From Octopus sinensis (lineage: Eukaryota): a DNA stretch of 64,000 nucleotides. Under the pieces are notes generated by a model. It saw only the letters and a list, made by a program, of their open reading frames with translations. It had not been told where the DNA came from and did not search any database. Numbering within the stretch: position 1 is the first letter of the stretch; each line of letters opens with the position of its first letter. Positions 6,551 through 31,554 of the stretch are shown here, piece after piece. The translations under genes were made by a program, and so were the position numbers. The stretch is from positions 12,710,001 to 12,774,000 of the forward strand of contig NC_043007.1 of the NCBI RefSeq assembly GCF_006345805.1, written 5' to 3'.

Positions 6551-6720
6551 GGCAGGAGTGGCTGTGTGGTAAGTAGCTTGCTTATGATCCACTTAGTTCC
6601 GGGTTCAGTTCCACTGCGTGGCACCTTGGGCAAGTGTCTTCTACTGTAGCCTCGGCTGACCAAAGCCTTGTGAGTGGATTTGGTAGACGGAAACTGAAAG
6701 AAGCCCATCATATATATGTA

Positions 6721-6763
<43 letters not shown>

Positions 6764-7226: not shown

Positions 7227-7259
<33 letters not shown>

Positions 7260-7260
<1 letters not shown>

Positions 7261-8275: not shown

Positions 8276-8321
<46 letters not shown>

Positions 8322-10259: not shown

Positions 10260-11105
10260 GAATAATAATAATAATAATAATAATAATCCTTTCTACTAAA
10301 GGCACAAAGCCTGAAATTTTGTAGGAGGGGACTAGCCAATTACATCGACCCCAGTGTTTCACTGATACTTTAATTTATCAACCCCAAAAGGATGAAAGGC
10401 AAAGTCGACCTCGACAGAATTTGAGCTCAGATCATAAAGACATGAAATGCTGCTAAGCATTTTGCCCGGTATGCTAACGATTCTGCCAACTTGCTGCCTT
10501 AATAATAATAATAAGAAGAAGAAGAATGTTTAAAATTTTGGCACAAGACCAGCAGTTTTTACAGATTGAATAGTCAGTTACATTGACCCTTGTGCTCAGC
10601 TGGTATTTATTTTATCAACCCCTAAAAGATGAAAGGTAGTCAACCTCAGCAGAGTTTGAACTCAGAATGTAAAACTGAAACAAATACCACTAAACATTTT
10701 TGTCTGACATACTAACATTTATTTCTTTACTGCCCACAAGGGGCTACACACAGAGGGGACAAACAAGGACAAACGGATTAAGTCGATTATATCGACCCCA
10801 GTGCGTAACTGGTACTTATTTATCGACCCCAAAAGGATGAAAGGCAAAGTCGACCTCAGCGGAATTTGAACTCAGAATGTAGCAGCTGACGAAATACCGC
10901 TAAGCATTTCACCCGGCATGCTAGCGTTTCTGCCAGCTCACCACCTTAATAATAATAATCCTGGGGTTGATGTAATCAATTAGGGAGTCCTAAACAATTA
11001 CATCGACCCCTAGTGTTCAACTGGTACTCGTTTCAGTGGTCCTGAAAGGATGAAAAGCAGTGTCAACCTCAGTGGAATTTGAACTAAGCATTTTGTCTGA
11101 TGCGC
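10260..11105 (-). mobile_element. Four stacked SINE B copies separated by (AAT)n
   Basis: Repeated cgaccccag...aaggatgaaaggcaaagtcgacctc...gaatttgaactcag at about 10285, 10530, 10727 and 10985. Confidence 0.85.
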
Positions 11106-11829
11106 CAATGATTTTAACAATAACAAGATTTCTAATAAAGGTAAAAAGGACAGTAATTTTGTGGGTTGGAATTTGTCAGTACCGACAGCTTTGCTCTGTC
11201 CTAGTATTTGACTGTGAGTTTTTATCATGTCCTCAAGGATGACAGCTGACCTCATTGAAATATGAAGTTAAACTGTAAAGAGCCTGAAGAAATACTCAAA
11301 CACTAACAATTCTGCCAATCCATCACCTTTGTAGGCTCTCATGGTTTCCGATCTTAACTGGTCAGACGTGTTATCATGTACATGCTTTGTCTTGGTTTAA
11401 AAGATGGACTACAAAAAATATTCTGCTCAACACCACAGACTTGCTTGTCAGTTGCTTGACCTTAAACAGTTGAGCATGTCCCTTAGTGGCTGACTAGCAG
11501 GAATAGTGGGGGAGTGTCATAGCTATATGTTGAGAGGAATTCTTTAGGGGTTTGAATAATTCACATCTGGAAATATGGGTATTTTGTTCATCAGCCTTAT
11601 TCAGGGACCTCTTGAGTGGGGATACTTGAACTGGAGAAAATTCTAATTGGGTCCCAACTGTAAGGTCATGCACTGTTTATCTTGATATGAAAACACCATG
11701 TTGTACACATGGTGTTGTGATGCATGTGCTTGGTGTACCCTTATCAGATGGCTAATCACGAGGGGTATATTTATGTCCTAGTGTCACTTTCAAGGCATGC
11801 ACTGCTCTTTTATTCAATAGTAATAACAA

Positions 11830-12240
11830 CAATAATAATAATAGCTTCTGATTTAGGTACAAGGCCAGCAAGTTTGAGGAGGAGGTGTCAGGTGATTTTA
11901 GCAACTCCAGTGCTTGATTGATACTATATTTTATTGACCTGGGAGGGATGGAAAGCAATGCTGACCTCAGCAGGATTTGAACTCAGAACGTAAAGGTCTG
12001 GAAGAAATATTGCATGGAACTTGGTGTGATTCTCTGATGATTCTGCAAACTTGCCACTTTGTATAATAACGGTGATAATAATGATTTCAAATTCTGACAC
12101 AAGGGCAGCAATTTCAGGGAAGTGGGGGGAAAGTCTATTGATCCTAGTACACAACTGGTATTTATTTTATCAACCCTGAAAGGATGAATGGTAAAGTTGA
12201 CCTTGGCAGAATTTGAACTCAGAATATAATGTAATATTAA
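11830..12240 (-). mobile_element. Two SINE B copies
   Basis: ggtacaaggccagcaag...gatttgaactcagaacg and gacacaagggcagcaa...gaatttgaactcag. Confidence 0.75.
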
Positions 12241-12419
12241 CAACAACAATAATAATGATGATGAAAATATTCTCAAGTGTATACTTCTGATGATCTATGA
12301 GAAAATTTAACATAACTCAAGCAGATCAGTTCCAAGCTGCCATTAAATATGAAATAAGTAAAAACTGATGTTGTTTAATTAGCTTATAGTACATTGTAAT
12401 TACAATGTACCGGATGTCT

Positions 12420-12640
12420 ACATTCCCAATCATCGCTTGATTTGCAAGAACTAGTAACCAATGGCACATAGATTATACCCTTGCTGCCACTTTAAAATAA
12501 GGAAGGCTACATTCAGTACTGTCTGAAATCTATAAAATAAATTTTAAAAAACCAACCATGGGGTGGTCACATCTGAAATACATTTGATCATAAGTCTGCT
12601 AGATTGGAGTTGACCTTGAGCTGAACAAGAACAATTTAGG
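12420..12640 (-). mobile_element. Unclassified interspersed repeat family F (also 16655-16725, 36575-36640, 39883-40045)
   Basis: The minus strand reads ttgttcagctcaaggtcaactccaatctagcagacttatgatcaaa; compare tttagctccagcttggacctggttgagcagacc at about 39890 and caagcaggcctatgatcaaag at about 36593. Confidence 0.55.
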
Positions 12641-12718
12641 AGAGTTTCTAGTTGAAAATATGAAACATAATTTCATCATGTCATATTATGTGCTGAAAAT
12701 AAATAAAGATATATATAT

Positions 12719-12757
<39 letters not shown>

Positions 12758-12760
<3 letters not shown>

Positions 12761-12990
12761 CTCTGTGGTAAGAAGCTTGCTTCCCAAACACATGGTTCTG
12801 AGTTTGGTCCCACTGCGTGGCACCTTGGGTAAGTGTCTTCTACTATAGCCAAGGGCCAACCAAAGCCTTGTGAGTGGATTTGGTAAACGGAAACTGAAAG
12901 AAGCCTGTCGTATATATGTATGGATGTTTGTGTGTCAGTGTTTGTCCCCCCAACCATCGCTTGACAACCGATGTCGGTGTGTTTATGTCA
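12758..12990 (+). mobile_element. SINE A, 3'-truncated
   Basis: ggctctgtggtaagaagcttgcttccc...gcttgacaaccgatgtcggtgtgtttatgtc. Confidence 0.85.
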
Positions 12991-13003
12991 TTTGACTGTA
13001 ACT

Positions 13004-13352
13004 ATGCTGGAGCACTGCCTTTCATTGAGCAAATCGACCCCAGGACTTACTCTTTGTAAGCCTAGTACTTATTCTATCTGTCTCTTTTGTCGAACCGCTA
13101 AGTTACGGGGACGTAAACACACCAGCATCGGTTGTCAAGCGATGTTGGGGAGACAGACACACAAATATATACACACACATATACATATATACGACGGGCT
13201 TCTTTCAGTTTCCATCTACCAAATCCACTCACAAGGTTTTGGTCAGCCCGAGGCTATAGTAGAAGACACTTGCCCAAGGTGCCATGCAGTGGGACTGAAC
13301 CCGGAACTATGTGGTTGGTAAGCAAGCTACTTACCACACAGCCACCCCTATG
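13004..13352 (-). mobile_element. SINE A abutting the previous copy in inverted orientation
   Basis: Reverse-complement match ending ctacttaccacacagccacc. Confidence 0.9.
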
Positions 13353-14519
13353 CCTACATCAATAATAAAGTACTAACGTTTTGATTGTTTGTCCAGTATC
13401 CTTGGTGTTTGGGTCACAGCTTTATGACACCCTCAAAAATATATACTAAAAATAGTGTCAGTGTAATATAGTTTAACAAAAGTCTGCTCTAAAATGTGTT
13501 TTGAATGCTTTTTAAAACCAGGCGATAGTTGCGGTGCTGCAGATATGGCTGTATGCTTTTAAAAGTTTTCTTTGTAACTGCATTGCTCTGAGTTCAATTC
13601 CACTGCGTAGCACTTTAGACAAATATCTTCTGCAATGGCCTCAGGTTGACCAAAGCCTTGTGAATTAAATTTCGTTGAGGGAAACTGTGTGTAAACCTGT
13701 TAAAGAGGGTCCATTCTTGTTTTTGTATTGGTCAACTTAATCAGTTTACCACCTAACCTTTGGCCACCTCTGGGACAGTCCACTGTTATAAGCTCCATGT
13801 TACATCTTCAGTCTTTGTATAACTTACTCCCTTCCTCTCACTAAATCTCAGTGCTTCTGACAAAAAGGTTATTCACGTGTTCTACCCTTACTCCTCTGGC
13901 TAAAGCCATAGCAGTAAATATTTTATTATCGAATATATTCCAGCTTGTTTCTTACATGATTAGTTAATAGTTTCAAATATTGGTAGTTTACGTGTCTGTC
14001 TGTCTGTCTATTGTTTGTGGTCACAGGTTTGTTGTCACTTAGCCATAATTTTTTCCCCCCTGACTGTATTCAGTTGTTTGTTTTTTGCGGCAAAATACAC
14101 CACTTAGTTTCACTGGCCTTAGTTACTCTCACTTCTGTTTCCTTCACTTTTATTTACTTTTTGTGTTTTTTTTGTCTTTTGTTTTAAATTATTCTAAAAT
14201 CAGTGCAGAATTTGAGTCAGATTATTTATCTATCATTCATACTTATTGTGTTCATAATTTTGTAATTTAGATAATTAACTATACTTCTTCAACCATTAAA
14301 AAAAAAAAAAAATGCTTCCTGAAATTTTAGTGTCGAGTCCAGACAGATTTCATTCCCAATCTCTCTTTGGTTGATGCTAAATAATTTTATTGATTTTTAG
14401 TATATTTGTAGTACTTTTTCTATTTTCTACTTAAAAAAACTCTTTTTTGATTCTCAAATTTTACTATTATCAGATGAAATTGTAAAAGAGTGATATTTTA
14501 ATATATATATATGTATATA

Positions 14520-14870
14520 TATATAAGATTAAATAAGGGTAGAAATTAATATCAATCAATTAAAACCAGTGGCTTAGCATATTTAAAAATCCAAAGATTA
14601 AAAATTGTTTTACATACAAAATTTAGAGGACTGACCACAAAAAAGTGGACAGCCTATATGCTAAACATAGACATCAAATCTTCATTACCACGAAGAATGT
14701 GTTCTCAAGAAAAATCTCAGCACAAAACCAAAATGTAAAAATAAGCAAGACAAATGAAAATATATGAAATAAAAAAACGATTGATTTTTATTCTTCGTGG
14801 TAATGAAGATTTGATGTCTGTTTAGCATATAGGCTGTCCACTTTTTTGTGGTCAGTCCTCTAAATTTTGT
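14520..14870. mobile_element. Unclassified repeat with a fold-back (self-inverted) end; same family as 62395-62772
   Basis: Arm 14616-14698 is the reverse complement of 14790-14870 except for a 2-nt indel. The lead sequence ataagggtagaaatt...aaaccagtggcttagcatatttaaaaatc is shared with about 62402. Confidence 0.8.
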
Positions 14871-15084
14871 GTGTGTGTGTATATATATATATATAGTCTG
14901 TGTTGCTTGAGACTTCTGGGACTTTATTTCACCTGGTAGCTTATTAAACTAATTCATCTGAAAAAGATACCAAGCAAAATTTAAAGTACCAACCAACATA
15001 GATTATAATAGATTTGACTTTACTCTCAGTATTGATTCCCTCAATTGGTAAATATTTCATTATTATTTTGAAATTTGCTTTAAA

Positions 15085-15092
15085 ATTTAGCA

Positions 15093-15135
<43 letters not shown>

Positions 15136-15141
15136 TTAGCA

Positions 15142-15209
<68 letters not shown>

Positions 15210-15240
15210 GATCTATCTATCGATCTATCTATCTATCTGT
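15085..15240. repeat. (TATC)n microsatellite, interrupted once by a duplicated tttagca segment
   Basis: Direct reading. Confidence 0.95.
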
Positions 15241-15244
15241 CTTT

Positions 15245-15305
15245 CTTTATAATATAAATAGCTATGTAGCTCCTCTGCAGCAAGAAATCCATTCTGCTCT
15301 GCTCC
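15245..15305 (+). mobile_element. Unclassified two-copy repeat (also about 5820-5885)
   Basis: tagctatgtagctcctctgca(a/g)caagaaatc...ttctgctct is present at both sites, each after tatct/tatat sequence. Confidence 0.5.
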
Positions 15306-16294
15306 CTTACTCTCACACTTTAAATCTTCATCCCATAGTTACCTTCTCTCTTTACTCTAGCCCCACTCAATCAAAGGGGATCTTAGTCTTGCCAACTATG
15401 TGGCAACTTTACTAGTGTTGGCTCCATGGTAAAAGTACCCAGCACATGCTGTAAAATTGATTGGCTTTAGGAAGAACACCCAACCACAGAAACCATTCCA
15501 AAGAAAGCATTGGGGTTTGATGCTGTGTTTGGATCTGAAAAATACTGCTAAACTGTCCAACCAATGGAACATGGACAGTGTGTGTGTATCAAGTAATTTA
15601 ATATCCCATGGAAATTTTTCTTCTCTTTATTGGTTAGTTTTCAAAATTTAAGAAAATATTTCATTCTTCTTGAAAACATGTCCCTATTAGGGTTATGAGG
15701 TTATTGTTAATAGAAAGGGTAACAACACACTTGGTCTGGCTTTTTGTTTTAAATTCATTTTCTTAACCGTTGTAGATTACAAAGATTATCTTAATAATTT
15801 TTAGGTCTACAGCAATTAATTGAAGTGACTTGGAATCAATTAGATTTGTCTCTTGATTGGTTTGTTTGTTTTCTGCTTGACGCTGGAGCATTCTGTTACT
15901 AGTATTTCATACCAAACTTCAATCCATACTACCATTTCCTAGTGTTCTTGTGAAAAATATTGAAAGTCCAGTTTTAATTTTTATTGTATGGATTTCTTTT
16001 CTGCTTTTTATTAATCACCTCCACATCATTGTAGTGTTTTGCTAGTGTTCTTTTCTACCTGGTTAACACCTAACACTTTTTATAATAACAGCTGCTCCAA
16101 TTATAATTTCACTGTTCTAACAACTAATAATTCATCTACTACATTACAGATATTTAAAATATTAAATTTTGTCTTTCACTACTGAGAAATAATAATGAAA
16201 AGAAGACAATGCTATTTTTTACATGGTCTCACCATCTTAAAAGGAAAAAGTGAAGGACACATAAAATAATTTAATACTAGCTACCAGTATAGTG

Positions 16295-16640
16295 AAGGCA
16301 CATGGCTCAGTGGTTAGAATGTCGGGCTCACCATCATAAGGTAGTGAGTTCAATTCCTGGACCAGGCTGTGTGTTGTGTTCTTGAGCAAGACACTTTATT
16401 TCACATTGCTCCAGTTCACTCAGCTGTAGAAATGAGTTGTGACGTCACTGGTACCAAGCTGTATTGGCCCCTTTGCCTCTCCCTTGGATAACATCGGTGG
16501 TGTGGAGAGGGGAGGTTGGTGTGCATGGACAACCACTGGTCTTCTTTAAACAATCTTGCCCAAACTTGTGCCTCCGAAGGGAACTTTCTAGGTGCAATCC
16601 CATGGTCATTCATGACCAAAGAGGGTCTTTACCCTTTTAC
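16295..16640 (+). mobile_element. tRNA-derived SINE family G, full length, with TTTACC-type tail
   Basis: A-box ggctcagtggttaga, B-box gagttcaattcc, central ttcttgagcaagacact. Second copy at 45428-45686 on the minus strand. Confidence 0.85.
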
Positions 16641-17122
16641 TAGCTACCCCTAAAAAGACAAGATTATCAAGGCTGGAATGATCATAAACCTGCTTAATCA
16701 GAGCTGAACTGGGGCTAAAAATAATTACTCCCTTACAATTTATTGAACATTTTTTTAATTAATGTCATACCAATCTAGTAAAATAGAATTAATGAAATTG
16801 GTAAATTAAATTGAAGGATTAGTTTTTTAAATGATTAAGTAACTGGTGATGGTTTGCAATATTTGTTAAGTTCAATTGCCATTAGTAATATAGAGTCTAA
16901 TATTTTGGGCCTCCAATGGAGAGTGAAGAAGAGGGAGAGAGGAGTGTTGTCACTTTGGCCTTTGGCAAGTAGCTGGAACAGTTTCTTAAAGCAATTTTTA
17001 TCAAAGTAGAAAACCATCAAAGGAAAGAATTTGATTCTTAAGCAATCTGTCTCAAAACTGCACTGACTTTCATTGAGGACTCATTCTTTGTGGAGTGACA
17101 TACATTCTGTTTTTCACTTCAG

Positions 17123-17145
17123 GAATACCATCCGGATCAAATTGA
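17123..17145 (+). CDS. PACSIN: Candidate 23-nt microexon of PACSIN/syndapin (EYHPDQI plus 2 nt), alternative to exon 27758-27906
   Basis: Acceptor ttctgtttttcacttcAG, donor GA|GTGAGT. Phase 0 in, phase 2 out, the same as exon 27758-27906. The peptide begins EYxP[D/E] like that exon. Confidence 0.55.
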
Positions 17146-17732
17146 GTGAGTCTTTCGTGGAAATTCTAGTGTGAAGTCTTGTACAAACTCTCATTTCACT
17201 AACTGCCTGGTGCTGCCTATGAAACTATGAGCTGAACAGTTTGCTTGGAGATATTGGTATAAATTTGATGAAAGAAAACAGAAAACCTTGCTTAATTACC
17301 CAGCTGTTGTTATCATGTAGATCTTTTTGTCTTTGTATCATAGTTAAAAGAATCTTTATAATTATATCTCAAGAATGTATAAGTTTCTAAAGTTTTCTCT
17401 GTATTAAGAAGGCTGTACAAATTGTTTTAGCTTTATGGTATGTGATCATTATATAATTGTTATAGCTTTTATGTTCTCTGGAAATCTCATGTTAGTTTTT
17501 TTTATTTTTTAATCGAATTTCAATTTATAAAAAAATTTATTTAAATTAGAAAATCAGTAAAATGTAATGGTGATTTAAAAAAAAAAATCCTGTAATGTTA
17601 TATAGAAACCATGCTAGTTATCTTTGTTATTTTTTCATACTTTTTTGCTATTTAAAAGGAAAAGGTTTAAGGAATTATATGAAATTATGTATCATCTTAA
17701 ATTCCACAACCATATATTTTTATAAACTTGTC

Positions 17733-18020
17733 TTTTTTTTCTTTTTTTTTTTTCAAGTTAATCATAAGTTTTAATGTAATAGATAGAAAACGAAGTTATG
17801 TATATATTTTACGGAGCCTGCATAATAAGTCCTGCAAGGAAAGCGCTACCAATATTTACAACCAAAGTTTAGTATCTTAGAAGAACGTATATCAGCCATC
17901 AAAGTTCCAACTCCAAGACCTTTCTTTGTTCACTGATATGTGAACCTTCGTTCTTAGTTATTCTGAACAAACTTGGTCTTGTTCAAAAGTTCATCATCAT
18001 TTATTCCATTTAATTTCCAT
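17733..18020 (-). pseudogene. Probable processed retrocopy (3' end of an unidentified mRNA)
   Basis: The minus strand reads NGINDDELLNKTKFVQNN*ERRFTYQ*TKKGLGVGTLMADIRSSKILNFGCKYW*, then a short UTR, ATTAAA (17770-17775), and a poly(A)-like tract 16 nt later (T-run 17733-17753). Confidence 0.5.
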
Positions 18021-18299
18021 GCATGTTGAGTAGGCATATGCCCATATTAGGCGTTATATGAACTTGAGGATTGTTATGATTGTGGAAATCAACATTTTGT
18101 TATTGTTGTTGTTATGTTTTATGAGGAATTTTATTTATTTTTCAAGATGAGTCAAGTTTTAGATTAATCTGGATCTGATTAGTCTCACTTCTGTTTATAG
18201 TTGTTCATATATTATTTATTGGTAAGGAAGATGTGTTGATAAAATCAATAGGGTGACATACAAAGCTACTTTGTAGTGTTTAATATGTCGTTATGTTAT

Positions 18300-18850
18300 G
18301 AATTTAAGCCTTCCCTATCGGGGTCAACTTCGCCTTTCATCCATCCAGGGTTGATAAAATACAGTATCAGGCAAGAACTGGGTTGATGTAAGCAACTATA
18401 CTCTATGTCTGGCTTTGTGCCTATGCTAGAAACCAATATCATATTTATTGCTAAATTGCTCGTTAAAGTCAATTTGTGTGTGTATGTATGTATATATGAT
18501 GCATGTTTATGTTCTTTCAACAAACAAGTGCCTTTGTATTACATTTATAAAAAGTTTTATAGATGTATTTATAAATAATTCGATTTTTTTACAAAAGAGA
18601 TGGAGTAGATTTTTTTCTATAAATTTACCTTTTTTCGACTGTAAACTTAGCATTCCCGTGTTAACATTTTGTTTCAAGTTAGCACGCCAGGTGAAATGCT
18701 TAGCGGTATTTCGTCTGTCTTTACATTCTGAGTTCAAATTCCACCGAGGTCGACTTTGCCTCTCATCCTTTCAGGGTCGATAAATTAAGTACCAGTTGCA
18801 TACTGGGGTCGATCTAATCGACCGGACCTTGAGCCTAGAGTAGAAAAGAA
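18300..18850. mobile_element. Inverted pair of SINE B copies (18300-18440 minus, 18680-18850 plus)
   Basis: Family B motifs on opposite strands; the 18680 copy is close to consensus. Confidence 0.75.
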
Positions 18851-18950
18851 TATTTTGTTGCAATGAATCGTACATGATAGTAGTTTACTAAGTTTCACTA
18901 ATTATTATTTTAACCTTTTGCAAATGGACAAGTTATAAATGGAAATTTTA

Positions 18951-19369
18951 ATATATTATTTACAATTGTTGGATAGGTGTCCTCATCTTGTTTACTCTTA
19001 CCGCAACATTTCAGCTGATGTACTCTCCAGCCTTCATCAGGTGTTCTGGTGGAATTTCGAACCCAACCCTTTATTTCACTAATGGGGCACTCTGTTCTCA
19101 TTCCTAAGGTATTTTTTTCTACTGATATTATTTCCCAAGTCTCTGCCTGAGTTCAATCCCAGGCAGGGACTTGGGAAATAATATCAACAGAAAACATCAA
19201 CAAAAAAATACCTTAGGAATGAGAACAGATTATCCCATTAGTCAAATAAAGGGTTAGGTTTGAAATTCCACCAGAACACCTGATGAAAGCTGGAGAGTAC
19301 ACCAGCTGAAACGTTGTGATAACAACAAACAAGGTGAGGACACCTGTCTGTCCATTGTAAATAATGTAC
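18951..19369. mobile_element. Long fold-back of a Penelope-like terminal repeat
   Basis: Arms of about 200 nt around the loop at 19150-19159. Each arm has ctgatgaa(g/a)gctggagagtaca(t/c)cagctgaaa, the kind of motif found at Penelope-like element termini. Family assignment is inferred. Confidence 0.6.
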
Positions 19370-20789
19370 ATAATTCCCCATCTCAAAAATATTGATTAGA
19401 CAATCTTAACATATTTTTGTTACTTAATAGTTTTAATTACACAATCAAAATTTCTTTCAAACACATTGATCTTTAAATATGGCCGGTTTAACTTTTGTAT
19501 GTCAGTGTTTTTCAGTTTTTTTGGGGTTTTTTTCTTGACTGGTTCGCTTTTGAAATTGTAGCATTGTCTTTCAAATGATAATACAATGTTTTTGAGGGAA
19601 AATCACATCTTTAGGTTTGATGGTGGTAAAGAGAATGTGTCAATGTGATCAACTATCCCGCTCTTCCAAAATTTCAGGCCTTGTGCCTACAGCAGAAAGG
19701 ATTGTTATCGTTAGCACCTTCGTTAGAATACTTAGCAGCATTTCTTCTGGGTCTTTGCATTCCGAATTTAATCTTTCCACTCGTGGAATTTAATAATTAG
19801 GGACCAAAGGGGATTAGTGGCATACTACATTGTCAAGACAGTGCAATAAAATAAAGAAGTGGGGTGGGCATCAAGTCATTGTCAGAGGAGGAAAATATAT
19901 ACAGTGTACATTCTGATCAGAGAATGAATGGTTTTGTATAAAACATTAGATAGATCCTCTCCTTGCCACCGCTATCCTACCTAATTTTCAGTCTCAAATA
20001 TTTTTATGACTTTTAAAATAATTCGGCCACCAGCAGAAACAGCCAGTACGGCTATAAACACAGTTGGATTTCCTTGGTACTAAACTCTTATGCTCACCCA
20101 AGCCACTCTAACCCAGGATGCTATAATACCCTTGATAGATAGCAATGAACAAATAAGTTCCCTGTCTAGAGATAGAGATTATTGCGCTATGGATTACAGC
20201 GGCCTACACTTAATTTACTTCACCATTATGTGTCTGTGAAAGAGAGAGTGTGTGTGTGTGTGATTGAGTGTGAGAAGGCAAGAGACAACTTCCAAACAAA
20301 GGAAGCTCATTTCCTCATACAACTTTCGTAGTATATTTGTTGAATGTAGTTTTAACCATGTTGTACTATTTATTGTATTTCCTTTGTTATTTGAAACTAA
20401 CTGCAATAAAATCTCTTTAACATTGAAATATGACTAACATTTGTTTTTTAATCTTAAAATGAATTTTTAAAACTGCTTTTCTATTTATATACCATGTTTG
20501 TTTATGTATAATACACCCTCATATATAACATGCCCCTCTAATTTTGGTCTATGAATTCCCAGGAAAATATCTTATATACACTGACTTTTCTAAATTAGAA
20601 GTGTCAAATCAAATTTATAATTGCTTTCCAATATATTTGGAGAAAATTTGTACATGCTAAGCAAAAGCATCTTTAAAAGTGACTTGGGAACTTTGCTGGT
20701 TAAAAGCAACTTTTAACTTAACTGGCAAACATGTGATATTACTACAGTCAACCTTATATAGCAAACTATAAAAAGAATGTGTTATGTAA

Positions 20790-21165
20790 ACCCGTCCATT
20801 TAAATATAACCAATGGTCCTCTGTCTAGAATGTACCACCTTAACCACGTTCAGTCATGCAGCCCAGCGTCCAGAGGGTGAGCTGATTTGTGATGTCCTCC
20901 TCCCACCTCCCACTTCCCAGCTGGCGCAAACGCACGGGCGGGCAGCTGAAGACCTGGGCAACGACAATAAAGGAGGACCTCTCCAAACTATCAGGTCCGC
21001 AGGTGGTCGGTCTGCGCAGATGGAACTGCGAATGGCTCGCTATCTCCAGTGACCTCACACAGGACTGTCAATCGTGGGCCGCCATGGTTCGTGATGCCGT
21101 CAGGACCAGAGAAAAAGCCAGCTCAACCCGCCCTGGGTGAACGCCGTCACAAGTACAAAGAAATG
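20790..21165 (+). mobile_element. 3' end of an RTE-clade LINE (degenerate ORF2 C-terminus, CAAGTA tail)
   Basis: Frameshifted HAAQRPEGELI...WRKRTGGQLKTWATTIKEDL...LTQDCQSWAAMVRDAV...STRPG*, then cacaagtacaa. Confidence 0.8.
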
Positions 21166-21699
21166 TCTAGAATGTCTATGGTAAGAAACGAACTATCACA
21201 AAGCACCATTCTGGGCCTACTTTTGGTTCTCATAATGTTGGCCTTGACAAAAAATATACAGTTAGCCACTCTCAGTGGATATACAGTCAAGATAGACAAA
21301 AATATCTGTGATCTCCAACAAAATCTAGACATCAGATACAACAGTAAATGACATATATTGTACAAGACAAAAAGAGAAAAAATGTCAAAATTCTGAGCTA
21401 CCAGGAACACCTCAGCACATTATATCTCTACTCTTTGGAACATTGATGGAAATAATGTGTTGTTATTTGTATGTGGAAGATTGTTCCAAACTTTGGCATG
21501 CAACAGAGAAAACAAAAACAAGAGAAACATGAAGAATGGAATGTACTGCCAGGTCCCAACACCCTTTCCCTCAAGCTATTATTTCAAGTACCTTTACAGC
21601 ACTAGTTTGGTATTTTCAAGCCCTCAATTATATATATGTGCATCTGAAAAGTTTTACAAAATTTGACCAAAGTTTCTCATGATATTTTGAAATGTATCT

Positions 21700-21965
21700 C
21701 GGTGTACTTCTTCCTAGGTGCTTCTATTAATTTGCCTTACCACTAATCACAGTCTTTTGTCTCTCCACCACTCTGAAGCTTTGTCTCATCACCTCATGGT
21801 CCTTCATCTCATTATTTAGTGTAGCCTGTTACCTTGCCATCCACCAGTTCTGTTTTGTTATCCTCCGTGGTCCCTTGCCTTGCTACTCGCTGTGATCCTT
21901 CATTTCAACAGTCTTTTTACCTCCCTGGTCACTACTGTCATTTGTCTCACCATCTTCTATAGTCC
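21700..21965 (-). mobile_element. Highly degenerate RTE LINE fragment (endonuclease-RT linker)
   Basis: The minus strand reads ...KGPRRITKQNWWM..., resembling RTE P.R..TWWWN. Purine-rich coding strand. Confidence 0.35.
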
Positions 21966-23169
21966 TCCATTTCATCACAGAACATGCACACACAACAAAA
22001 AATAACTGGCTGACTCTTTTGTTGTGTATCCTCTTTCAGCATGAACTGGATACAGTTTAGCATGTCAACATCACCAGAAAAGAAAAACAGTAACTGGATA
22101 GAAACAAAAAAACATCCCTTCTGCCCTATATCATTTGTTATCCAGAATCACTGTCCTGCTTGGCAAATAGGTGTGGATGCAGCTTTCAAAGCCCATGTTT
22201 CCTTTGTACATTTCCCTTTATTTTTAACATAGCATCTATGATTGAATGCCCTTTCTATCACCAACCACTTCACAGCATGAACTAGATCCATTTTTATCAT
22301 GCTACCAGTTCTATAGAGCTTGTCTGTCGCTCAGAGAGTTTCCTTTTCTCTATAATCAGTTCTTATTCAGAGTTGCTGCCTTCCTTTATGTTCAGTATTG
22401 ATCATTATCAACATAGAATATGTATTTCAACATCTGTTCGACATAAACTGTGACACGTGTGCCCCTCGTTCTTTATGCTTTTGATATTGATTCATTTCAA
22501 GAATAGTTTGTGGCAGTTGAGTCACGGAAGCAAAATGCCAAGCGGTATTTAGGCTTGGGATTCAAAATCTCATCAGTGGTTTCAGGTTTGGTCCCACTGT
22601 GCAACACCTTGGGAAAGTGTCTTCTACTTAGAGAGCCAGGCCTTGTGAGCTAAACTTGGTAAATAGAAACCAAAAAGAAACCTTGTGGGTGTGTGTGTGT
22701 GTTATATAATTCTTTTAGACAGCAGTCTGGAAATATCTCGACTGCTGGTTTTCAGGCGTTTATGGTCTCTATCAGCACATAGGTATACAATTACGTGCTT
22801 TGACTGCAGAGTGTTTAGCTCTTATTTCTAGCAATGTAGGTGTTTACAACACCCTCAGTCATATTTACTGACGGCTATAGTACATATATTTATATATGTA
22901 TATGTATGTCTATGTGTGTTCATGTATCTTTTGACATCGTGCATTAATTGTAGACAAATTGCACTGTCATACAAACAGGTATTTCTTTGCAGTCTTCTTT
23001 GTGAAAACTTATTCAGACTAAGGGAAATATTACCTCACTTGGAAATGAGTGAGTGTTGGCAGCAGGAAGAGCATCCAACTGTAATAAAATCTGAATCTTG
23101 TCTGACCCATGCAAGCATTGAAAAGTAAATGCTAAAACAATGAAGATATACATGGTTAGAAAAGATTTG

Positions 23170-23330
23170 GGTGGTCGGTCTGCGCAAATGGAACCACGAA
23201 AGGCTCGCTATCTCCAGTGACCTCGCACAGGACCGTCAAGCGTGGGTCGCCATGGTTTGTGATGCCATCAGGACCTGAGAAAAAGCCAGCTCAACCTGCC
23301 CTGGGTGAACACCAACACAAGTACAAGTAA
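23170..23330 (+). mobile_element. Second, shorter 3' copy of the same RTE element
   Basis: High similarity to 21003-21155; ends cacaagtacaagtaag. Confidence 0.85.
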
Positions 23331-23962
23331 GAGTTCAAATCCCACCTGCCTGGAGAAGGCAATGAGAAACAGCTCCAGTGTTCATTCCAAGTCTAGTCCT
23401 GGTACCCGAAGGTCCAGTAATCTGCTAAACAGCAGCAGGGAAGGGTACAGGCACTCCCAGGTTGTATAGAGAGTGCTGGAGAAGGTTCACATTTACAAGA
23501 CCTGCCCAAAGATAGACCACCACTAGACATAGTAGTCACATGTTGACATAGATGCTCTTGGTCCTCCCATGTTTGATCCAGTAGAGCATTGAGAATGTGG
23601 TAACTGGAGGAGAAGAGGATTGCGCCAGCAGTTGGTTGGTGCCCATTTTGTAGCTCTGAAGCAACATGAAATGATGTGTCTTGCTCAAGAGCACAATGTA
23701 ATACTTGGTCCTTAAAGCAAATCCTATAAGGAGCAGAGCACCAAAATATTGTATTACCTCTACACTGGAGACCCAATCTGAATACTTGCTACTGAGAAGT
23801 CTCTGTTAAACACCCAAGGACTATATAGGGTAGTGTTAAACTCACAAATGGATTAAGACTACTACCTACACACTGAAACAGGTTTCTGTGCCCCAAATAC
23901 AAGAATGAAGTTTCTGTACAGTTTCCATCTACCCAATATTAGTCAGAAATATAGATAGATAG

Positions 23963-24801
23963 AGAGGGTGATTAATAAACTGTTGTCTAAATTATGCAAA
24001 ATTGAAAATAACACTGACATCTCATTTTAGCAGAAATATTTACCAAAATTACATTTTAAAAATATCTTGAAATGCTAAACAGTAAATTTATTCAATAAAA
24101 TCGCCATTGGCTTCAACCACAGCCTCCAGACGACTTTGGAATCTCCTGCAACTCTTCTGGACGGTCTCCTTGTTTAAGTTGGTGAATACTGCCATAATCC
24201 TTGCCTTCAGTTCTTCTTTGGTGTTACAAGGAGTTTTGTTGGTTTCTTGCTCTACTATGCCCCACACATAATAATCAAGGGTGTTGCGGTCTGGGGAGTT
24301 AGGTAACCAGATGTTAGGGGTGATATGATTACAGAAATTGTCTGACAACCACGGCTGAGTTCTCCTGCTCGTGTGATATGGTGCAGAGTCGTGTTGCCAA
24401 ACATAGGGTCTTCCAGCAGCCACCCTCTTGACTCAGGGCAGCACTCCCTCCTCCAGGGACTTGATGGAGGCCTCCAAGTTGAGTCTGGAGGCATCACTTG
24501 TGATCACTCCAAACACAAGGATGTTGATTGGATGTTTGATTTTTATCACTTTTGGTACATGTCCTTAGACTGACACCCAAACACTCTGAACTGTTCATAT
24601 TGGAACTCCCAGTGCAAACGCCGAGTAGTACAGCATGTTGTTTCCAAATTTCTAGCAGAGTGAAATGCATCATGGTGCTGTTTTTTCTCACAGACAGTGC
24701 CCAACTGACCCTACTACACTGTGGGGTTTGCAAAATCAAAGACAATGCGCACGTGCAAAATTAAAAATATAAAATGGCAACAATTTACCCATCACACCTT
24801 A
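23963..24801 (-). mobile_element. Degenerate Tc1/mariner-superfamily transposon (maT/DD37D-like), internally deleted
   Basis: VFGVITSD...LP*VKRVAAGRPYVWQHDSAPYHTS...NIWLPNSPDRNTLDYYVWG...LEAVVEANGDFIE. Imperfect TIRs gggtgattaataaactgttgtc and ggcaacaatttacccatcacacc. Confidence 0.85.
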
Positions 24802-24818
24802 CACACACCCACACACAC

Positions 24819-25037
24819 ACAGGTGATATTGGAAAATTCCTGGCTTCGGCTAACAAAAAATACCAGAGGATCAGTTAATTATGATTTTCTTCAACATATA
24901 CACCTCTCATATTTGCACACTTATTGCAGTGGTCCTTAAGTTTTTCGAAGCCCTGTAAAAGAACTTAGAAGGTTGGGCCTCCAATCAAGCCTTTCACAAA
25001 ACCCTTAAAGCCAGGAATTTTTCAGCACCCCCTTGTG
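24819..25037 (-). mobile_element. Mariner-derived MITE keeping the transposase C-terminus
   Basis: TIRs acaggtgatattggaaaattcctggctt and aagccaggaatttttcagcacccccttgt. The minus strand reads QGFEKLKDHCNKCANMRGVYVEEN. Confidence 0.75.
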
Positions 25038-25041
25038 TATA

Positions 25042-25074
<33 letters not shown>

Positions 25075-25282
25075 TATATATATATATATATATATTCATA
25101 CATCTGTCTTATCTGCACCTACATACATGTAACATCAGTATGTATATATTTTATCCATAACTAGATGCAGGTAATATCTGCCTTGGTGAATTCCTTCTGA
25201 CCCATGTGAGCATAGACACTGAAGCAATGATGATGTATATGTCTGTGTGTGTGTGTAGAAAATTCTCTATTTTATCTACGAA

Positions 25283-25445
25283 TCATCATCATCATCATCA
25301 TCATTTAACGTCCGCTTTCCATGCTAGCATGGGTTGGACGGTTCAACTGGGGTCTGGGGAGCCCGAAGGCTGCACCAGGCCAGTCAGATCTGGCAGTGTT
25401 TCTACAGCTGGATGCCCTTCCTAACGCCAACCACTCCGAGAGTGT
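25283..25445 (-). mobile_element. SINE C, 5'-truncated
   Basis: (CAT)n-tttaacgtccgctttccatgctagcatgggttggacg...gatgcccttcctaacgccaacc. Confidence 0.9.
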
Positions 25446-26249
25446 AGTACGTAACAATAATACATCTATCTATTTCATTTGCACCTACATGTAACATTGG
25501 TACACATATTGATCTTACCAATGCTTAAACAAAGGTTAAAGCAACCTGACTGTGCTGCTTTGTATTCCTGTATACGGTATGCACACACACACACATATAC
25601 ATACACACGTGCATGGACACATGCGTGCGTGCTCCCACCAATGTGTATATTTATGTATGAGGTGTTTTGTTAGTGTGCTTGCCACACTTCAATCGTATTG
25701 TCCCTTATTGATTTCTCGTCCATGGCAGTGTGCCAACTCCAAGAATCTCTCTGCAGCTGTTTCCTACCATTCAGTTTGATTAATGGCAAAGACATTGATC
25801 TCCCTCTTCACAACATCTTTAAAGCCAAATGCCAAGCTCAATGTCTGTGTAGCATGAATGCCAGCTCACCTTAATTTGTCCTGCGGTAATCCTCCATCTG
25901 ACAGTTGTCAGACAGTATCACCCCCCACCCCCCACCAAAGATGATTGAACATGGCTTTAATCTTACTGCAATAATAGAAAAACGTATATTGAGAGCACAT
26001 GTGGTCGCAAGTGGGTGCTCAGAGCACATGTGGTCGCAAGTGGATGCTCTTTAATAAACTCTTTGATGTCAGAGGCATTTCCTATGTAACGGGGAATTGG
26101 CAGCCTTTTTTTCCAGTTAATGCACCCACCCTTATCTAATGCAGGGTAACCATGTACCTCCTCTGTAGCAAGGTACCTGACATAAAGCCACCTCCGTCTC
26201 TCGACTACACCCTCTGCACATTCAATTAAAAGGGTTTTATTTTTTTTTC

Positions 26250-26860
26250 CTTTTCTTGCAACCTTTACTTGTTTGACAACCTTACTGGTGCCAGTGCCGC
26301 ATAGAAGACAACCAGTAGACATAGTAAAGTGGTTGGTGTGAGGAAGGGCATCCAGCCATAGAAACCATGCCAAAACAGACATTGGAACTTGATGCAGTCC
26401 TGTGGCGGTGCCCCAGCATGGCCGCAGTCAAATGACTGAAACAAGTAAAAGAGTATATTTTTATGTCCTCAAAGGGTTTATGTTTTGTTTGTTTTTTTAT
26501 CTCATTTCATTTTGAAATATGGGATAATAATGGAGTAAAATGTGGGGTAATAATGAAGTAGAATACAGGTAATAATGAAATTAAATGTGGGATAACAAGA
26601 AATGTAGGTTAAAAACATGAAGTGTTGGGCAATAATGAAGTAAAGTGTGGGGTTATAATGACAGGAATGCAAATCATCATCATCTAACATCCATTTTCCA
26701 TGCTAGCATGGGTTGGATGGTTCGACCGGGGTCTGGGAAGCCAAGAGGCTGCACCAGGCTCCAGTCTGGTCTTGCAGTGTTTCTACAGCTGGATGCCTTC
26801 CTAATGCCAACCACTCCGTGAGTGTAGTGGGTGCTTTTTACGTGCCACCAGCACAGGAAA
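26250..26860 (-). mobile_element. Two SINE C fragments (26250-26400 plus, 26675-26860 minus) around a degenerate minisatellite
   Basis: ggaagggcatccagccatagaaacc on the plus strand and catccattttccatgctagcatgggttgg on the minus strand. Confidence 0.7.
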
Positions 26861-27295
26861 AGTAATTACTTAAATTCAGAGAACTAACGAGATATAATGT
26901 GGAGTAAATAACAAAGTAAAATGCCGAATAATAACAATAAGAAATGTGGAGCAATGATGAAGAGAAACCTGGAGTAATAATGAAGAAGCAACAAGAGTAT
27001 TATTCCCAGAAGTTCCTCAGTGGAGAGTATTACTCTTACTACAATACTAACATAGTGAAGCTCCTTAAGGAGTACTCTTTTGTACAGAAATAAATGAGGC
27101 TGGACAATCTGATGCGAAGAGTGAGGGATAATTCAAATGGGGATGGGGATGGCCAGTGGTAAATAAGAAGGGTTCTGTATTAAGAATGAAGAGTGGATGT
27201 AAACAGAAGTGACTCAAGGGAATGGGAGTGATGACTGGCAGCTCAAGAAAGAATTTTCAGATACCGTTCTTCAGTGATTAGTTTGATGTTTTATA

Positions 27296-27530
27296 AGGCG
27301 GCGAGCTGGCAGAGTCGTTAGCACACCGGGCGAAATGCTTCATGGTATTTCACCCGTCGTTATGTTCTGAGTTCAAATTCCGCTGAGGTCGACTTTGCCT
27401 TTCATCCTTTCAGGGTCAATAAATTAAGTACCAGTTACACATTGGTGTCAATGTAATCGACTTAATCCGTTTGTCTGTCCTTATTTGTCCCTTCTATGTT
27501 TAGCCTCTTGTGGGTAATAAAGAAACAGAT
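27296..27530 (+). mobile_element. SINE B, full length
   Basis: aaggcggcgagctggcagagtcgttagc...tgtgggtaataaagaaa. Confidence 0.9.
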
Positions 27531-27757
27531 CAGTTTGATGTTTTACCACTTGCCAAACCGTTTCCTCGTGGTACTTTATTTAATTAAAATTTTGAAATTG
27601 TATATTTACGGAAGTAATTAGCAATTTCCAAAATTGTATAATGCTTTTTTATTCAGTTTCCAATTTCATATTTATAGCTTTTGCTTCTTTTGGTGGAGTG
27701 TTTTTTTTTTTCTACTTGCATTTTAGTAAATATTTATTTTCGTTCATTTTTGCTCAG

Positions 27758-27906
27758 GAATACTCACCAGAATTGCACAATATCACCAAAACAAAGAAGC
27801 CAACATTTGGTTCAAATGAAGGCATCACCATAACAGGTATCAAACACAACCGTGAAAGTTATGCTGCCAACTCAGACCATCCTCCGGCAGGATCCAATTA
27901 CCAAAA
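27758..27906 (+). CDS. PACSIN: PACSIN/syndapin exon immediately after the F-BAR domain (EYSPELHNITKTKKPTFGSNEGITITGIKHNRESYAANSDHPPAGSNYQK)
   Basis: Acceptor ttcatttttgctcAG, donor AA|GTAAGA. 149 nt, phase 0 to 2. EYSPEL...EGITITGI resembles the vertebrate PACSIN segment EWSADL...DGVTLTGI (recalled, not aligned). Confidence 0.9.
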
Positions 27907-31383: not shown

Positions 31384-31554
31384 ATTTACTAGTGGTGTGA
31401 AATCAAAGCTCTCTTACGTTGTCAACATATCAAAATCCTTTACTGGAAGGTGGTGGACAAGCCATGCCACAAATGCCATGATCAAAATCTCTGAGTCCTT
31501 GTCTGCTCATGCGCTGTGTGGCCTGGAAGCTATTGATAAAAATCCGTTTGGCAG
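31384..31554 (+). CDS. PACSIN: Candidate cassette exon with NPF (FTSGVKSKLSYVVNISKSFTGRWWTSHATNAMIKISESLSAHALCGLEAIDKNPFG)
   Basis: Acceptor gtatattttcacAG, donor AG|GTTTGA. 171 nt = 57 codons, phase 2-2. Only this frame is open. NPF at 31541-31549. Confidence 0.55.

Follow-up and report, generated by a model that had tools for sequence, protein, structure and literature searches.

Can a 23-nt exon that appears in no annotation take the place of the first linker exon in octopus syndapin? Syndapin links membrane curvature, dynamin, and actin during the recycling of synaptic vesicles, and the region right behind its F-BAR domain is an established point of regulation, as illustrated by PKC phosphorylation of PACSIN2 at S313. 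A preliminary description of this locus proposed that a candidate microexon (m23) and a 149-nt exon (e149) form a mutually exclusive pair derived from an ancient exon duplication. Here, we examine this proposal in a 64-kb window, i.e., the whole stretch of DNA that was analyzed, and weigh it against other explanations for the 23-nt element.

The Syndapin Gene and Its Exons

In the window lies the PACSIN/syndapin gene of Octopus vulgaris, represented by its 3′ part (Table 1). Its assignment as a syndapin is borne out by the exons, which match PACSIN isoforms of O. vulgaris with 100% identity. The identical O. vulgaris proteins carry the FCH domain PF00611, and a PDB search matched PACSIN F-BAR structures (E = 1e-118). 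NPF motifs are encoded by four exons and the SH3 domain by the last two. No last F-BAR exon is present inside the 64-kb window; alignment with O. bimaculoides places it about 0.7 kb upstream of position 1.

Table 1. Exons, flanks, and RNA duplex arms of the syndapin locus (positions in the 64-kb window).
Feature	Position	Strand	Description
dock	14194..14228	+	upstream duplex arm; core TCAGTGCAG at 14200; in 62-nt conserved island 14188-14249
m23 upstream flank	17020..17122	+	conserved intronic; polypyrimidine tract and acceptor ttctgtttttcacttcag
selector	17036..17071	+	downstream duplex arm; core CTGCACTGA at 17058; 52-87 nt upstream of m23 acceptor
m23	17123..17145	+	candidate microexon, 23 nt, GAATACCATCCGGATCAAATTGA; EYHPDQI + 2 nt; phase 0 in, phase 2 out
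m23 downstream flank	17146..17336	+	GTGAGT donor and conserved intronic sequence; in-frame TGA 17147-17149 if unspliced
e149	27758..27906	+	canonical first linker exon, 149 nt; EYSPELHNITKTKKPTFGSNEGITITGIKHNRESYAANSDHPPAGSNYQ + 2 nt; phase 0 in, phase 2 out
e171	31384..31554	+	phase-2 cassette exon, 171 nt; NPF motif; possible partner of m23 or e149; unannotated
e231	38589..38819	+	phase-2 cassette exon, 231 nt; NPF and five IEQNAPVA repeats; used in P0121, P0125, and P0126
e108	48883..48990	+	phase-2 cassette exon, 108 nt; NPF; used in P0001 and P0125
e284	56296..56579	+	284 nt; phase-2 acceptor; last NPF motif and first half of SH3
last coding exon	59806..59912	+	second half of SH3 and stop codon

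The cassette exons differ in their conservation and use. e171 is conserved in Argonauta and O. bimaculoides with its splice sites kept and an in-frame 3-nt indel, and it occurs in none of the database isoforms examined. Because a conserved coding exon is thus missing from every isoform, the annotation of octopus syndapin is demonstrably incomplete, which adds to the case for m23 as a further overlooked exon. e231 has no match in the Argonauta locus. Read-through of the e108 donor leads to QKKK-stop and an SH3-less isoform, with AATAAA at +163; this form is annotated in O. vulgaris (P0124) and also found in cuttlefish (P0123 and P0128, one of them a Logan transcript). A Pro/Gly/Met-repeat terminal exon of the same gene also gives SH3-less forms.

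Anatomy and Reading Frame of m23 and e149

m23 sits in a long intron between a strong acceptor (cattctgtttttcacttcag) and a gtgagt donor, while e149 is framed by a strong acceptor (tttcgttcatttttgctcag) and a gtaaga donor. Both exons start with GAATAC, encode EYHPD and EYSPE, respectively, and lead from phase 0 to phase 2, in agreement with the preliminary description. If m23 and e149 are joined, a stop arises inside e149, and if both are skipped, a phase-0 donor meets a phase-2 acceptor. The proposed rule that exactly one of these two neighboring exons keeps the frame, whereas both or neither breaks it, holds in all three species compared (O. vulgaris, O. bimaculoides, and Argonauta hians). 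Since m23, like e149, ends in phase 2 and the other combinations run into a stop, the choice would be frame-coupled, and this frame argument makes it plausible that m23 is mutually exclusive with e149. The chance expectation for EY.P[DE] is 0.06 occurrences in 27.7 kb, and the combination of this motif, an AG before it, and a phase-2 GT arose in 0 of 300 first-order Markov simulations.

The segment that the choice would switch had been characterized as 42 residues of basic, low-complexity sequence. The size is correct (49 codons in e149 versus 7 in m23), but the segment is not merely of low complexity, as e149 aligns to a stretch of human PACSIN2 in which a PKC site (S313) and the conserved motif G(I/V)T(I/L)T are located. 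Phosphorylation of S313 reduces membrane binding of PACSIN2 (PMC4832444). In the AlphaFold prediction, approximately the first 10 residues of e149 are ordered (pLDDT ~75, short helix) and the remainder falls below 50; the length of m23 roughly equals the ordered part. Nothing in the sequence indicates how e149 would be skipped on use of m23.

Conservation Among Octopods

Orthologs of m23 are present in Argonauta hians (L001:51875-51897; EYHPDQI, one synonymous change CAA>CAG) and in O. bimaculoides (L002:52702-52724; DYHPDQI, GAA>GAC, E>D). Splice sites and frame are kept in both species, and hence the exon is not a chance occurrence. Both substitutions fall at third codon positions, and D is found at the first residue in 9 of 54 other PACSINs; with three species and two substitutions only, this codon-position argument is weak (p about 0.09).

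m23 is embedded in a block of 317 nt (17020-17336) that is 88-96% identical between Octopus and Argonauta. Identity amounts to 88% at positions -80 to -1, beyond which the upstream sequence does not align, and to 92% at positions +1 to +60, and the block stops near 17336. In the alignment with Argonauta, the block (E = 2.5e-86) outscores every short coding exon of the gene, including e149 (8e-42), e171 (4e-39), e284 (5e-76), and the last exon (2e-25), and only the Pro/Gly/Met-repeat exon of ~0.9 kb scores higher. The m23 block and the dock are the sole unique conserved islands of the 14-24 kb intron between the F-BAR exon and e149, the remainder of which shows no Octopus-Argonauta alignment. 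Conservation of the flanks equals that of the exon, and the conservation of m23 is thus by itself no proof of coding constraint. At e149, whose splice sites are strong, only about 25 nt upstream and 9 nt downstream align with Argonauta, a pattern that would be expected of a constitutive exon.

A neutral pseudo-exon that resembles an exon by chance and has no function would be in line with the absence of m23 from all annotations and assemblies searched. However, it would account neither for a block of such identity in an otherwise unaligned intron nor for a conserved complementary partner 2-3 kb away, and we regard it as extremely improbable. With respect to its length (within 3-27 nt) and its strongly conserved flanks, m23 resembles neural (eMIC/SRRM4-type) microexons, but its 23 nt are not a multiple of three. 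The UGC nearest to the 3′ splice site lies ~62 nt upstream, within the selector.

Origin of the Shared Motif

The residues common to m23 and e149 are the most conserved ones past the exon boundary in 57 PACSINs ([ED] in 54/54, Y in 50/54, [ED] in 47/51). At the DNA level, 12 of 23 positions differ, and the identical bases are found mainly in motif codons, the pattern expected under selection on the peptide. A local alignment of the m23 and e149 regions scored no better than shuffles, with only the codons for E, Y, P, and D/E being alike. Since there is no DNA similarity beyond these codons, a duplication origin is unproven. Moreover, no m23-like exon was found in the orthologous intron of the gastropod Haliotis, and the suggested ancient exon duplication is thus not demonstrable. 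Tandem duplicates at this junction do exist in other phyla.

A Conserved Long-Range RNA Duplex

The dock and the selector are predicted to pair with -29.7 kcal/mol, and likewise in O. bimaculoides and Argonauta, over a span of about 2-3 kb (2.2-3.0 kb). Among 12,751 windows of the 64-kb stretch, the selector is the best partner of the dock (z -6.1), and the same holds in the Argonauta locus across 19,184 windows (z -5.6). The complementary 9-mer cores occur in one copy each per locus. A second selector near e149 was found neither in Octopus nor in Argonauta.

The long-range duplex points to selection on RNA structure in the intron. Together with conservation that reaches well past the 23 nt and the absence of EYHPDQI transcripts from the databases searched, it might indicate that the block is a conserved intronic element other than an exon, for instance an enhancer, a structured RNA, or a decoy exon for long-intron processing, with frame and peptide being coincidental or a relic. 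This would require acceptor, donor, phase-correct open frame, and EYxP[D/E] to coincide, for which the chance is well below 0.01. Furthermore, the block has no Rfam match above threshold, and its local fold is no better than that of shuffles (z about +1), so that we consider a non-exon element unlikely. The signature of a recursive splice site or RS-exon is absent as well: joining the upstream exon end (...TTTGTC in O. bimaculoides, ...TTTGAG in Argonauta) to the GA at the start of m23 regenerates no GT.

Possible Productive Versus Unproductive Use of m23

e149, which measures 149, 149, and 152 nt in O. vulgaris, O. bimaculoides, and Argonauta, respectively, is contained in all database isoforms of six cephalopods, none of which has m23 instead. 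EYHPDQI was found neither in a protein or assembled transcript among 5.8 billion clusters (lengths 69-219 and 239-761 aa) nor among all members of seven cephalopod clusters. No m23 isoform occurs among roughly 15 database sequences from the six cephalopods, and the literature searched holds no account of the pair, consistent with its being undescribed, as had been supposed.

If e149 is constitutive, m23 might act as a poison exon: its inclusion would create a stop in e149 (F-BAR followed by EYHPDQIENTHQNCTISPKQRSQHLVQMKASP-stop) and either lower syndapin by nonsense-mediated decay (NMD switch) or give an SH3-less F-BAR protein. The premature stop arises in 3/3 species and, with e149 retained, lies >50 nt upstream of the last junction. 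A length that is not a multiple of three is unusual for coding microexons and usual for poison exons, and thus the 23 nt of m23 count against a coding role. Very high conservation of exon and flanks, as seen for m23, is also expected of regulated unproductive-splicing exons, and the presence of e149 in all known isoforms with flanks that are not conserved fits the same picture. Functional conserved non-triplet microexons are documented (e.g., the 28-nt tnt-3 exon of C. elegans; PMC13247117). A poison exon leaves unexplained, however, that the proper frame of m23 yields the four most conserved post-F-BAR residues while the remainder of the exon is unrelated to e149, and that both interspecies substitutions spare the peptide. 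We therefore see a poison exon as a serious rival, if less probable than the mutually exclusive reading. The poison-exon and mutually exclusive readings are compatible, as double inclusion could be the enforcement arm of an exclusive choice.

Alternatively, the acceptor (17122/17123) might be used without the donor. Translation would then end at the TGA overlapping the donor (…NWPEFV-EYHPDQIE-stop), and intronic polyadenylation would yield an F-BAR-only syndapin. The two SH3-less forms of the same gene offer a precedent for such a composite terminal exon, and Argonauta has an AATAAA at +119 followed by GU-rich sequence. In O. vulgaris, on the other hand, no AATAAA or ATTAAA is present within 1.5 kb downstream (background 2 per kb), no polyadenylation site position is conserved across the three species, and the consensus GTGAGT donor is kept in all of them. 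Moreover, no F-BAR-only protein ending in EYHPDQIE was found in the databases, although its length is within the range searched. A composite terminal exon hence appears very unlikely.

A Proposed Frame-Coupled Splice Switch After the F-BAR Domain

Taken together, m23 is conserved and unannotated, and it is very probably a regulated alternative exon. We assign a probability of roughly 45% to the reading that it is a genuine alternative microexon of octopod syndapin, mutually exclusive with e149 through the reading frame and controlled by its flanks and the duplex. Established here are the features of the sequence and how they are conserved, the frame rule, the duplex, and what e149 is homologous to; the splicing-in of m23, the accompanying skipping of e149, any tissue specificity, and the consequences for the protein are inferred. 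m23 would be translated in frame straight after the last F-BAR exon and, with e149 skipped, be spliced to the phase-2 acceptor at 31384, 38589, 48883, 49517, or 56296, resulting in a full-length F-BAR/NPF/SH3 protein. Transcripts with both exons or neither would contain a premature stop and be removed or give a truncated protein. Inclusion might be controlled by the conserved intronic flanks and the duplex, which ends 52 nt upstream of the acceptor.

The m23 isoform would retain the [E/D]-Y-x-P-[D/E] cap conserved after the F-BAR domain in PACSINs and lack the ~41 subsequent residues, i.e., the basic T-K-T-K-K patch aligned with PACSIN2 S313 and the GITITGI motif. The predicted syndapin product has a shortened linker, and its binding to membranes would no longer be tuned via the T-K-T-K-K patch. 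A more far-reaching proposal, which we consider rather doubtful, is that octopods use this size-asymmetric switch (23 versus 149 nt), gated by the conserved 2-3 kb duplex, probably in particular cell types such as neurons, to change membrane binding by removing the PKC-site-like patch and GITITGI while leaving F-BAR, NPF, and SH3 untouched. If true, a splice switch that deletes the stretch after the F-BAR domain would be a new, genetically encoded setting of syndapin activity, and m23 would exemplify a coding microexon that all cephalopod annotations have overlooked. The dock and selector islands offer a simple mutable handle on the role that long-range RNA structure plays in splicing beyond insects and vertebrates. 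If m23 is a poison exon instead, it would represent conserved dosage control of an endocytic gene, which would be new for the PACSIN family.

Comparison With Known Systems

FGFR2 IIIb/IIIc are frame-enforced mutually exclusive exons, where the reading frame is lost if an mRNA contains both or neither. m23 and e149 are similarly adjacent alternatives of which only single-exon mRNAs would be productive, with exclusivity here deduced from the frame. Known pairs have comparable lengths and show clear homology, whereas m23 and e149 differ in size (23 versus 149 nt) and share no detectable DNA homology. In the insect mutually exclusive clusters of Dscam exon 6 and 14-3-3 zeta, docking sites and selectors pair at the RNA level. 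Likewise, an octopus intronic element past a constitutive exon pairs with sequence ahead of an alternative exon. In contrast to the insect clusters, where a selector lies ahead of each alternative exon, the octopus has one selector, that of m23, and none upstream of e149. With this single selector, a mechanism of competing structures is absent, and the effect of the duplex on splicing is putative.

Alternative exons (exon A) at the same junction after NWPxF[E/V] and with an [E/D][Y/F] start are annotated in RefSeq for syndapins of ticks, spiders, the horseshoe crab Tachypleus, insects, Artemia, and the brachiopod Lingula anatina (X3), which we count in favor of m23 being an alternative exon. 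As with m23, the cap motif is kept whichever exon is used. Exon A has about 37-51 codons, is in frame, and carries its own basic patch and GITL motif; it is added before exon B rather than replacing it. m23, in contrast, consists of 7 codons and 2 nt, shifts the phase, and would depend on the skipping of exon B (e149) to be productive. With only 7 residues, homology of m23 to exon A cannot be shown. If octopods do use the switch, alternative splicing of this junction in arthropods and brachiopods as well would make it an ancient regulatory hotspot of protostome syndapins.

The highly conserved, regulated tnt-3 microexon of C. elegans (28 nt; PMC13247117) is, like m23, not a multiple of three. 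Its inclusion shifts the downstream frame to another C-terminus, while the frame after m23 can be restored by skipping the next exon. In vertebrates, the long and short isoforms of PACSIN2 differ in how many NPF motifs they contain and leave the segment after the F-BAR domain untouched (PMC9285741), whereas the m23/e149 switch would alter the very segment that directly follows the F-BAR domain.

Exon structure and reading frame

On its + strand the window encodes the 3' portion of a PACSIN/syndapin gene, whose database proteins contain F-BAR (PF00611) and SH3 domains. Alignment to O. bimaculoides places the last exon of the F-BAR (…MSMNWPEFV, ending in phase 0 at a GTAAGT donor) ~0.7 kb before window position 1, and tblastn with an approximate PACSIN1 query found no F-BAR exon in 1..17122. 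The preliminary description had proposed a candidate 23-nt microexon (m23) and the 149-nt exon starting EYSPEL (e149) as a mutually exclusive pair. When the sequence was read directly, the features of both exons were all found where that description had placed them, and both exons are indeed phase 0 in and phase 2 out. Inclusion of both breaks the frame as claimed and reads EYHPDQIENTHQNCTISPKQRSQHLVQMKASP-stop. Furthermore, this frame rule is kept in all three loci compared, with 23 nt for m23, 149 nt (window), 149 nt (O. bimaculoides) and 152 nt (Argonauta) for the EYSPEL exon, and a stop upon double inclusion. Every acceptor after e149 is phase 2, and each cassette exon has a length divisible by three.

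Features of the syndapin locus and of the RNA duplex near m23 (window positions; exons e171 to e284 are named by length in nt)
Feature	Position	Strand	Content	Sequence
Last F-BAR exon			3' end in O. bimaculoides	…CCTGAATTTGTC
Dock	14194-14228		upstream arm, pairs with selector	core TCAGTGCAG
Selector	17036-17071		downstream arm, pairs with dock	core CTGCACTGA
m23	17123-17145	+	candidate microexon	GAATACCATCCGGATCAAATTGA; acceptor side cattctgtttttcacttcag; donor gtgagt; genomic continuation 3' of m23 GTGAGTCTTTCG
e149	27758-27906	+	canonical first linker exon	first 12 nt GAATACTCACCA; borders tttttgctcag, GAATACTCACCAGAA…CCAAAA, gtaaga
e171	31384-31554	+	NPF motif	first 12 nt ATTTACTAGTGG
e231	38589-38819	+	NPF motif, five IEQNAPVA repeats	first 12 nt GGAAGAGCCACA
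e108	48883-48990	+	NPF motif	first 12 nt GCAAGAGAGCTA
Pro/Gly/Met-repeat exon	49517-50384	+	many (P/A)PGMG repeats	first 12 nt CTCACCCAGGCA
e284	56296-56579	+	NPF motif, SH3 first half	first 12 nt TGCTGAGACTGC
Last exon	59806-59912	+	SH3 second half, stop	

The phase-2 cassette e171 (FTSGVKSKLSYVVN…AIDKNPFG) and its splice sites are conserved in both Argonauta (168 nt) and O. bimaculoides; each has lost 3 nt without a change of frame and keeps the NPF motif. None of the database isoforms carries e171, which would seem to be another coding exon of the gene that annotation has missed. The repeats of e231 are five tandem units of 24 nt. Octopus isoforms use this exon, but no counterpart could be detected at the locus in Argonauta, and it may, on this comparison, be specific to the Octopus lineage. 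The Pro/Gly/Met-repeat exon lies within an ORF at 49368-50381, encodes ~290 residues and has a conserved counterpart in Argonauta (72% across 933 nt). It is annotated as an alternative 3' exon replacing SH3 in CAI9729814 (O. vulgaris) and XP_036362971.1 (O. sinensis), and is joined to the SH3 exons in the O. bimaculoides model XP_052827969.1.

Conservation of the microexon

Whole-gene loci of Argonauta hians (L001, 96 kb) and O. bimaculoides (L002, 94 kb) were compared with the window. The orthologous Argonauta intron spans 14.2 kb from …NWPAFE/gtaagt to the EYSPEL exon and contains m23 at L001:51875-51897 (cattctgtttttcacttcag/GAATACCATCCGGATCAGATTGA/GTGAGT) with one synonymous change. In O. 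bimaculoides m23 is GACTACCATCCGGATCAAATTGA (DYHPDQI, starting GACTACC) with identical splice sites. The two substitutions among species both fall at third codon positions, and the D in first position is the state of 9/54 other PACSINs.

Octopus and Argonauta introns are otherwise unalignable. Dispersed repeats aside, unique collinear alignment is confined to the coding exons, parts of the 3'UTR, the m23 block, 14188-14249, 31926-32030 and 55838-55897. The intron between the F-BAR and e149, which measures 23.6 kb in O. bimaculoides, has just two unique conserved islands over its full length: the m23 block and the 62-nt stretch at 14188-14249. The m23 block (17020-17336) aligns to Argonauta with E = 2.5e-86, compared with 8e-42 for e149, 4e-39 for e171, 5e-76 for e284 and 2e-25 for the last exon, and is outscored solely by the ~0.9-kb Pro/Gly/Met-repeat exon. 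Between Octopus and Argonauta the exon itself is 96% identical; identity in the flanks is 88% (-80..-1) and 92% (+1..+60), and it decays beyond. O. bimaculoides adds little because it is too close to the window species (97-98% at the m23 block versus an intron background of ~88-90%). Thus far m23 is seen in two octopod genera, Octopus and Argonauta, and this conservation excludes a chance origin. The 2-kb orthologous intron of the gastropod Haliotis asinina contains no exon of the form [ED][YFW]xx[DE] after an AG, and metagenome DNA scans with the microexon and with the selector gave 0 matches each.

The m23 block might instead be a non-exonic conserved element, but splice sites, frame and motif coincide in it, and it shows neither an Rfam family (one sub-threshold snoRNA-like match in 16500-17900, E = 0.55) nor a stable local fold. 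A local hairpin hiding m23 and its donor was also rejected (predicted fold z +1.0 and +0.9 versus shuffles, no compensatory change). Recursive splicing at m23 is ruled out, since the junction of the upstream exon with m23 does not recreate GT.

The other two islands shared by Octopus and Argonauta are non-exonic (+ strand): 31926-32030 (72%) lies ~370 nt downstream of e171 and 55838-55897 (87%) ~400 nt upstream of e284, and neither pairs significantly with the m23 flanks. A short dispersed repeat with many copies (7373-7783, 8328-8530, 18732-18822, 27294-27468, 34751-35225, 63463-63675 and others) recurs at both other loci, that of O. bimaculoides and that of Argonauta; such repeats are normal intronic content but a source of spurious cross-species matches.

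Putative m23 peptide and the F-BAR/linker junction

After the NWPxF[E/V] exon boundary, 57 PACSINs show [E/D] (54/54), Y (50/54), any residue, P or E, and [E/D] (47/51), and m23 carries exactly these conserved residues. By chance, the 27.7 kb upstream of e149 should contain the motif EY.P[DE] 0.06 times, and 0/300 Markov simulations produced it behind an AG and in a frame that stays open as far as a phase-2 GT. A third match, GAATATGCTCCAGAATAA at 9067-9084 (+, EYAPE-stop), has no preceding AG and no Argonauta alignment and is probably due to chance; two intronic matches against 0.06 expected are curious.

The preliminary description had suggested that m23 and e149 look like an ancient exon duplication. 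The DNA agrees in the motif codons alone (GAATAC, CCN, GAN) and the local alignment of the 300-nt regions scores 10 versus 10.7 ± 1.4 for shuffles, so a duplication is not demonstrable. The likeness of the two exons is the pattern expected if selection acted on the peptide rather than on the nucleotides.

AlphaFold2 predicts the F-BAR of the annotated isoform with high confidence and a short helix at EYSPELHNIT (pLDDT ~75), and pLDDT is <50 from residue 376 up to SH3. On this model, the contribution of m23 would be limited to roughly the ordered cap. In the alignment of e149 with human PACSIN2, the octopus T of K-T-K-K lies opposite S313, whose phosphorylation by PKCα reduces membrane binding and tubulation (PMC4832444). 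Most PACSIN sequences conserve the G-I-T-[IL]-T motif of e149. An m23 isoform would lose both the S313-aligned site and this motif, a loss that would presumably alter membrane binding.

Alternative exons beginning [E/D][Y/F] are annotated at the same junction in many arthropods and in Lingula, so the F-BAR/linker junction is a recurrent site of alternative splicing; these differ from m23 in being in-frame cassettes before an EY(S/T)PE(L/V) exon. In RefSeq isoforms of the brachiopod Lingula anatina (P0017/P0005) and of many arthropods (P0106, P0108, P0041, P0049 and others), two tandem related exons follow the F-BAR, each reading EY(N/S/T)(P/E)E…, then KK…, then GI(T/Y)L…, and the first is a cassette. 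The pair looks like the product of an old tandem duplication in the syndapins of protostomes, and we found no description of it in the literature. Octopus-genus proteins (P0001, P0125, P0126) all have NWPEFV in the last F-BAR exon. E ends this motif (NWPxFE) in 56/57 aligned PACSINs, including Argonauta, cuttlefish and squid-like transcripts, and on this alignment the E>V change is specific to the Octopus lineage and affects a nearly invariant residue adjoining the alternative junction.

Transcript evidence and the possible fate of m23-containing transcripts

Over the lengths covered, EYHPDQI was found in no sequence of a collection of 5.8 billion clusters of proteins and assembled transcripts. 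A junction-focused search over 239-761 aa returned seven candidates, all with EYSPEL, and a 125-aa junction query over 69-219 aa returned no cephalopod sequence. This absence is weak evidence because the clusters listed include no Logan-derived Octopus PACSIN. Annotation pipelines often miss microexons, and de Bruijn assemblies tend to lose minor isoforms.

Every member of the seven cephalopod clusters uses e149, which has strong splice sites and non-conserved flanks and is not skipped in known isoforms. Such a seemingly constitutive e149, the non-triplet length of m23 and its conservation would all fit a poison exon, kept alongside e149 and leading through the premature stop to NMD or to an SH3-less protein, but the preserved cap motif of m23 would then be left unexplained. 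Alternatively, m23 could be a composite terminal exon ending EYHPDQIE-TGA. Its donor resembles that of e108 (AAAAA/GTAATGA, 48980-49000, +, with an in-frame TAA) in containing a stop codon, and the gene does make SH3-less forms by read-through of e108 (…QKKK-stop), which are annotated in O. vulgaris (P0124) and occur in cuttlefish (P0123, P0128, including a Logan transcript), with an AATAAA 163 nt downstream. However, AATAAA/ATTAAA occurs 0 times within 1.5 kb after m23 in O. vulgaris, and O. bimaculoides and Argonauta show no conserved poly(A) signal site.

Long-range pairing upstream of m23

The 62-nt island (14188-14249) is complementary to the upstream flank of m23. Its dock arm pairs with the selector in 9 + 6 + 6 (+4) base pairs, the pairing being split by a 1-nt bulge, with ΔG = -29.7 kcal/mol in the window, -29.7 in O. 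bimaculoides and -29.6 in Argonauta; 2.8, 3.0 and 2.2 kb separate the arms, respectively. RNAduplex scans of the dock against every 45-nt window ranked the selector first across all 64 kb of the window (12,751 windows, z -6.1) and likewise across the complete Argonauta locus (19,184 windows, z -5.6). Within the 11-18 kb of intron covered downstream of the dock, the runners-up lay near -23 kcal/mol. As the arms do not differ between species, there are no compensatory changes, and the evidence for the duplex is therefore the joint conservation of two complementary islands. The stretch from the selector to the m23 acceptor holds a probable branch point (gtgAc, about -25). No second selector was found near e149, so the arrangement is not a competing docking/selector system; apart from the dock, pairing of the m23 flanks with e149, e171, e284 or other conserved islands did not exceed shuffles.

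Relation to known splicing systems

Taken together, we rate m23 as an alternative microexon, conserved and unannotated, that is accompanied by a long-range duplex. It is almost certainly a functional element, and we put the probability that it is spliced into some transcripts at about 0.85. That its productive use is mutually exclusive with e149 is more tentative, at slightly less than even odds. The finding is solid and testable, with moderate reach. As the preliminary description had supposed of the exon pair, we found no paper on syndapin mutually exclusive exons, and none on a PACSIN microexon at the m23 site or on splicing of cephalopod syndapins; nor did we find a description of alternative splicing at the PACSIN F-BAR/linker junction. 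The kinds of system considered here are all known, namely mutually exclusive exons enforced by frame, neural microexons, poison exons and long-range pairing within introns, and in the linker of PACSIN2 alternative splicing of an NPF exon is known (PMC9285741).
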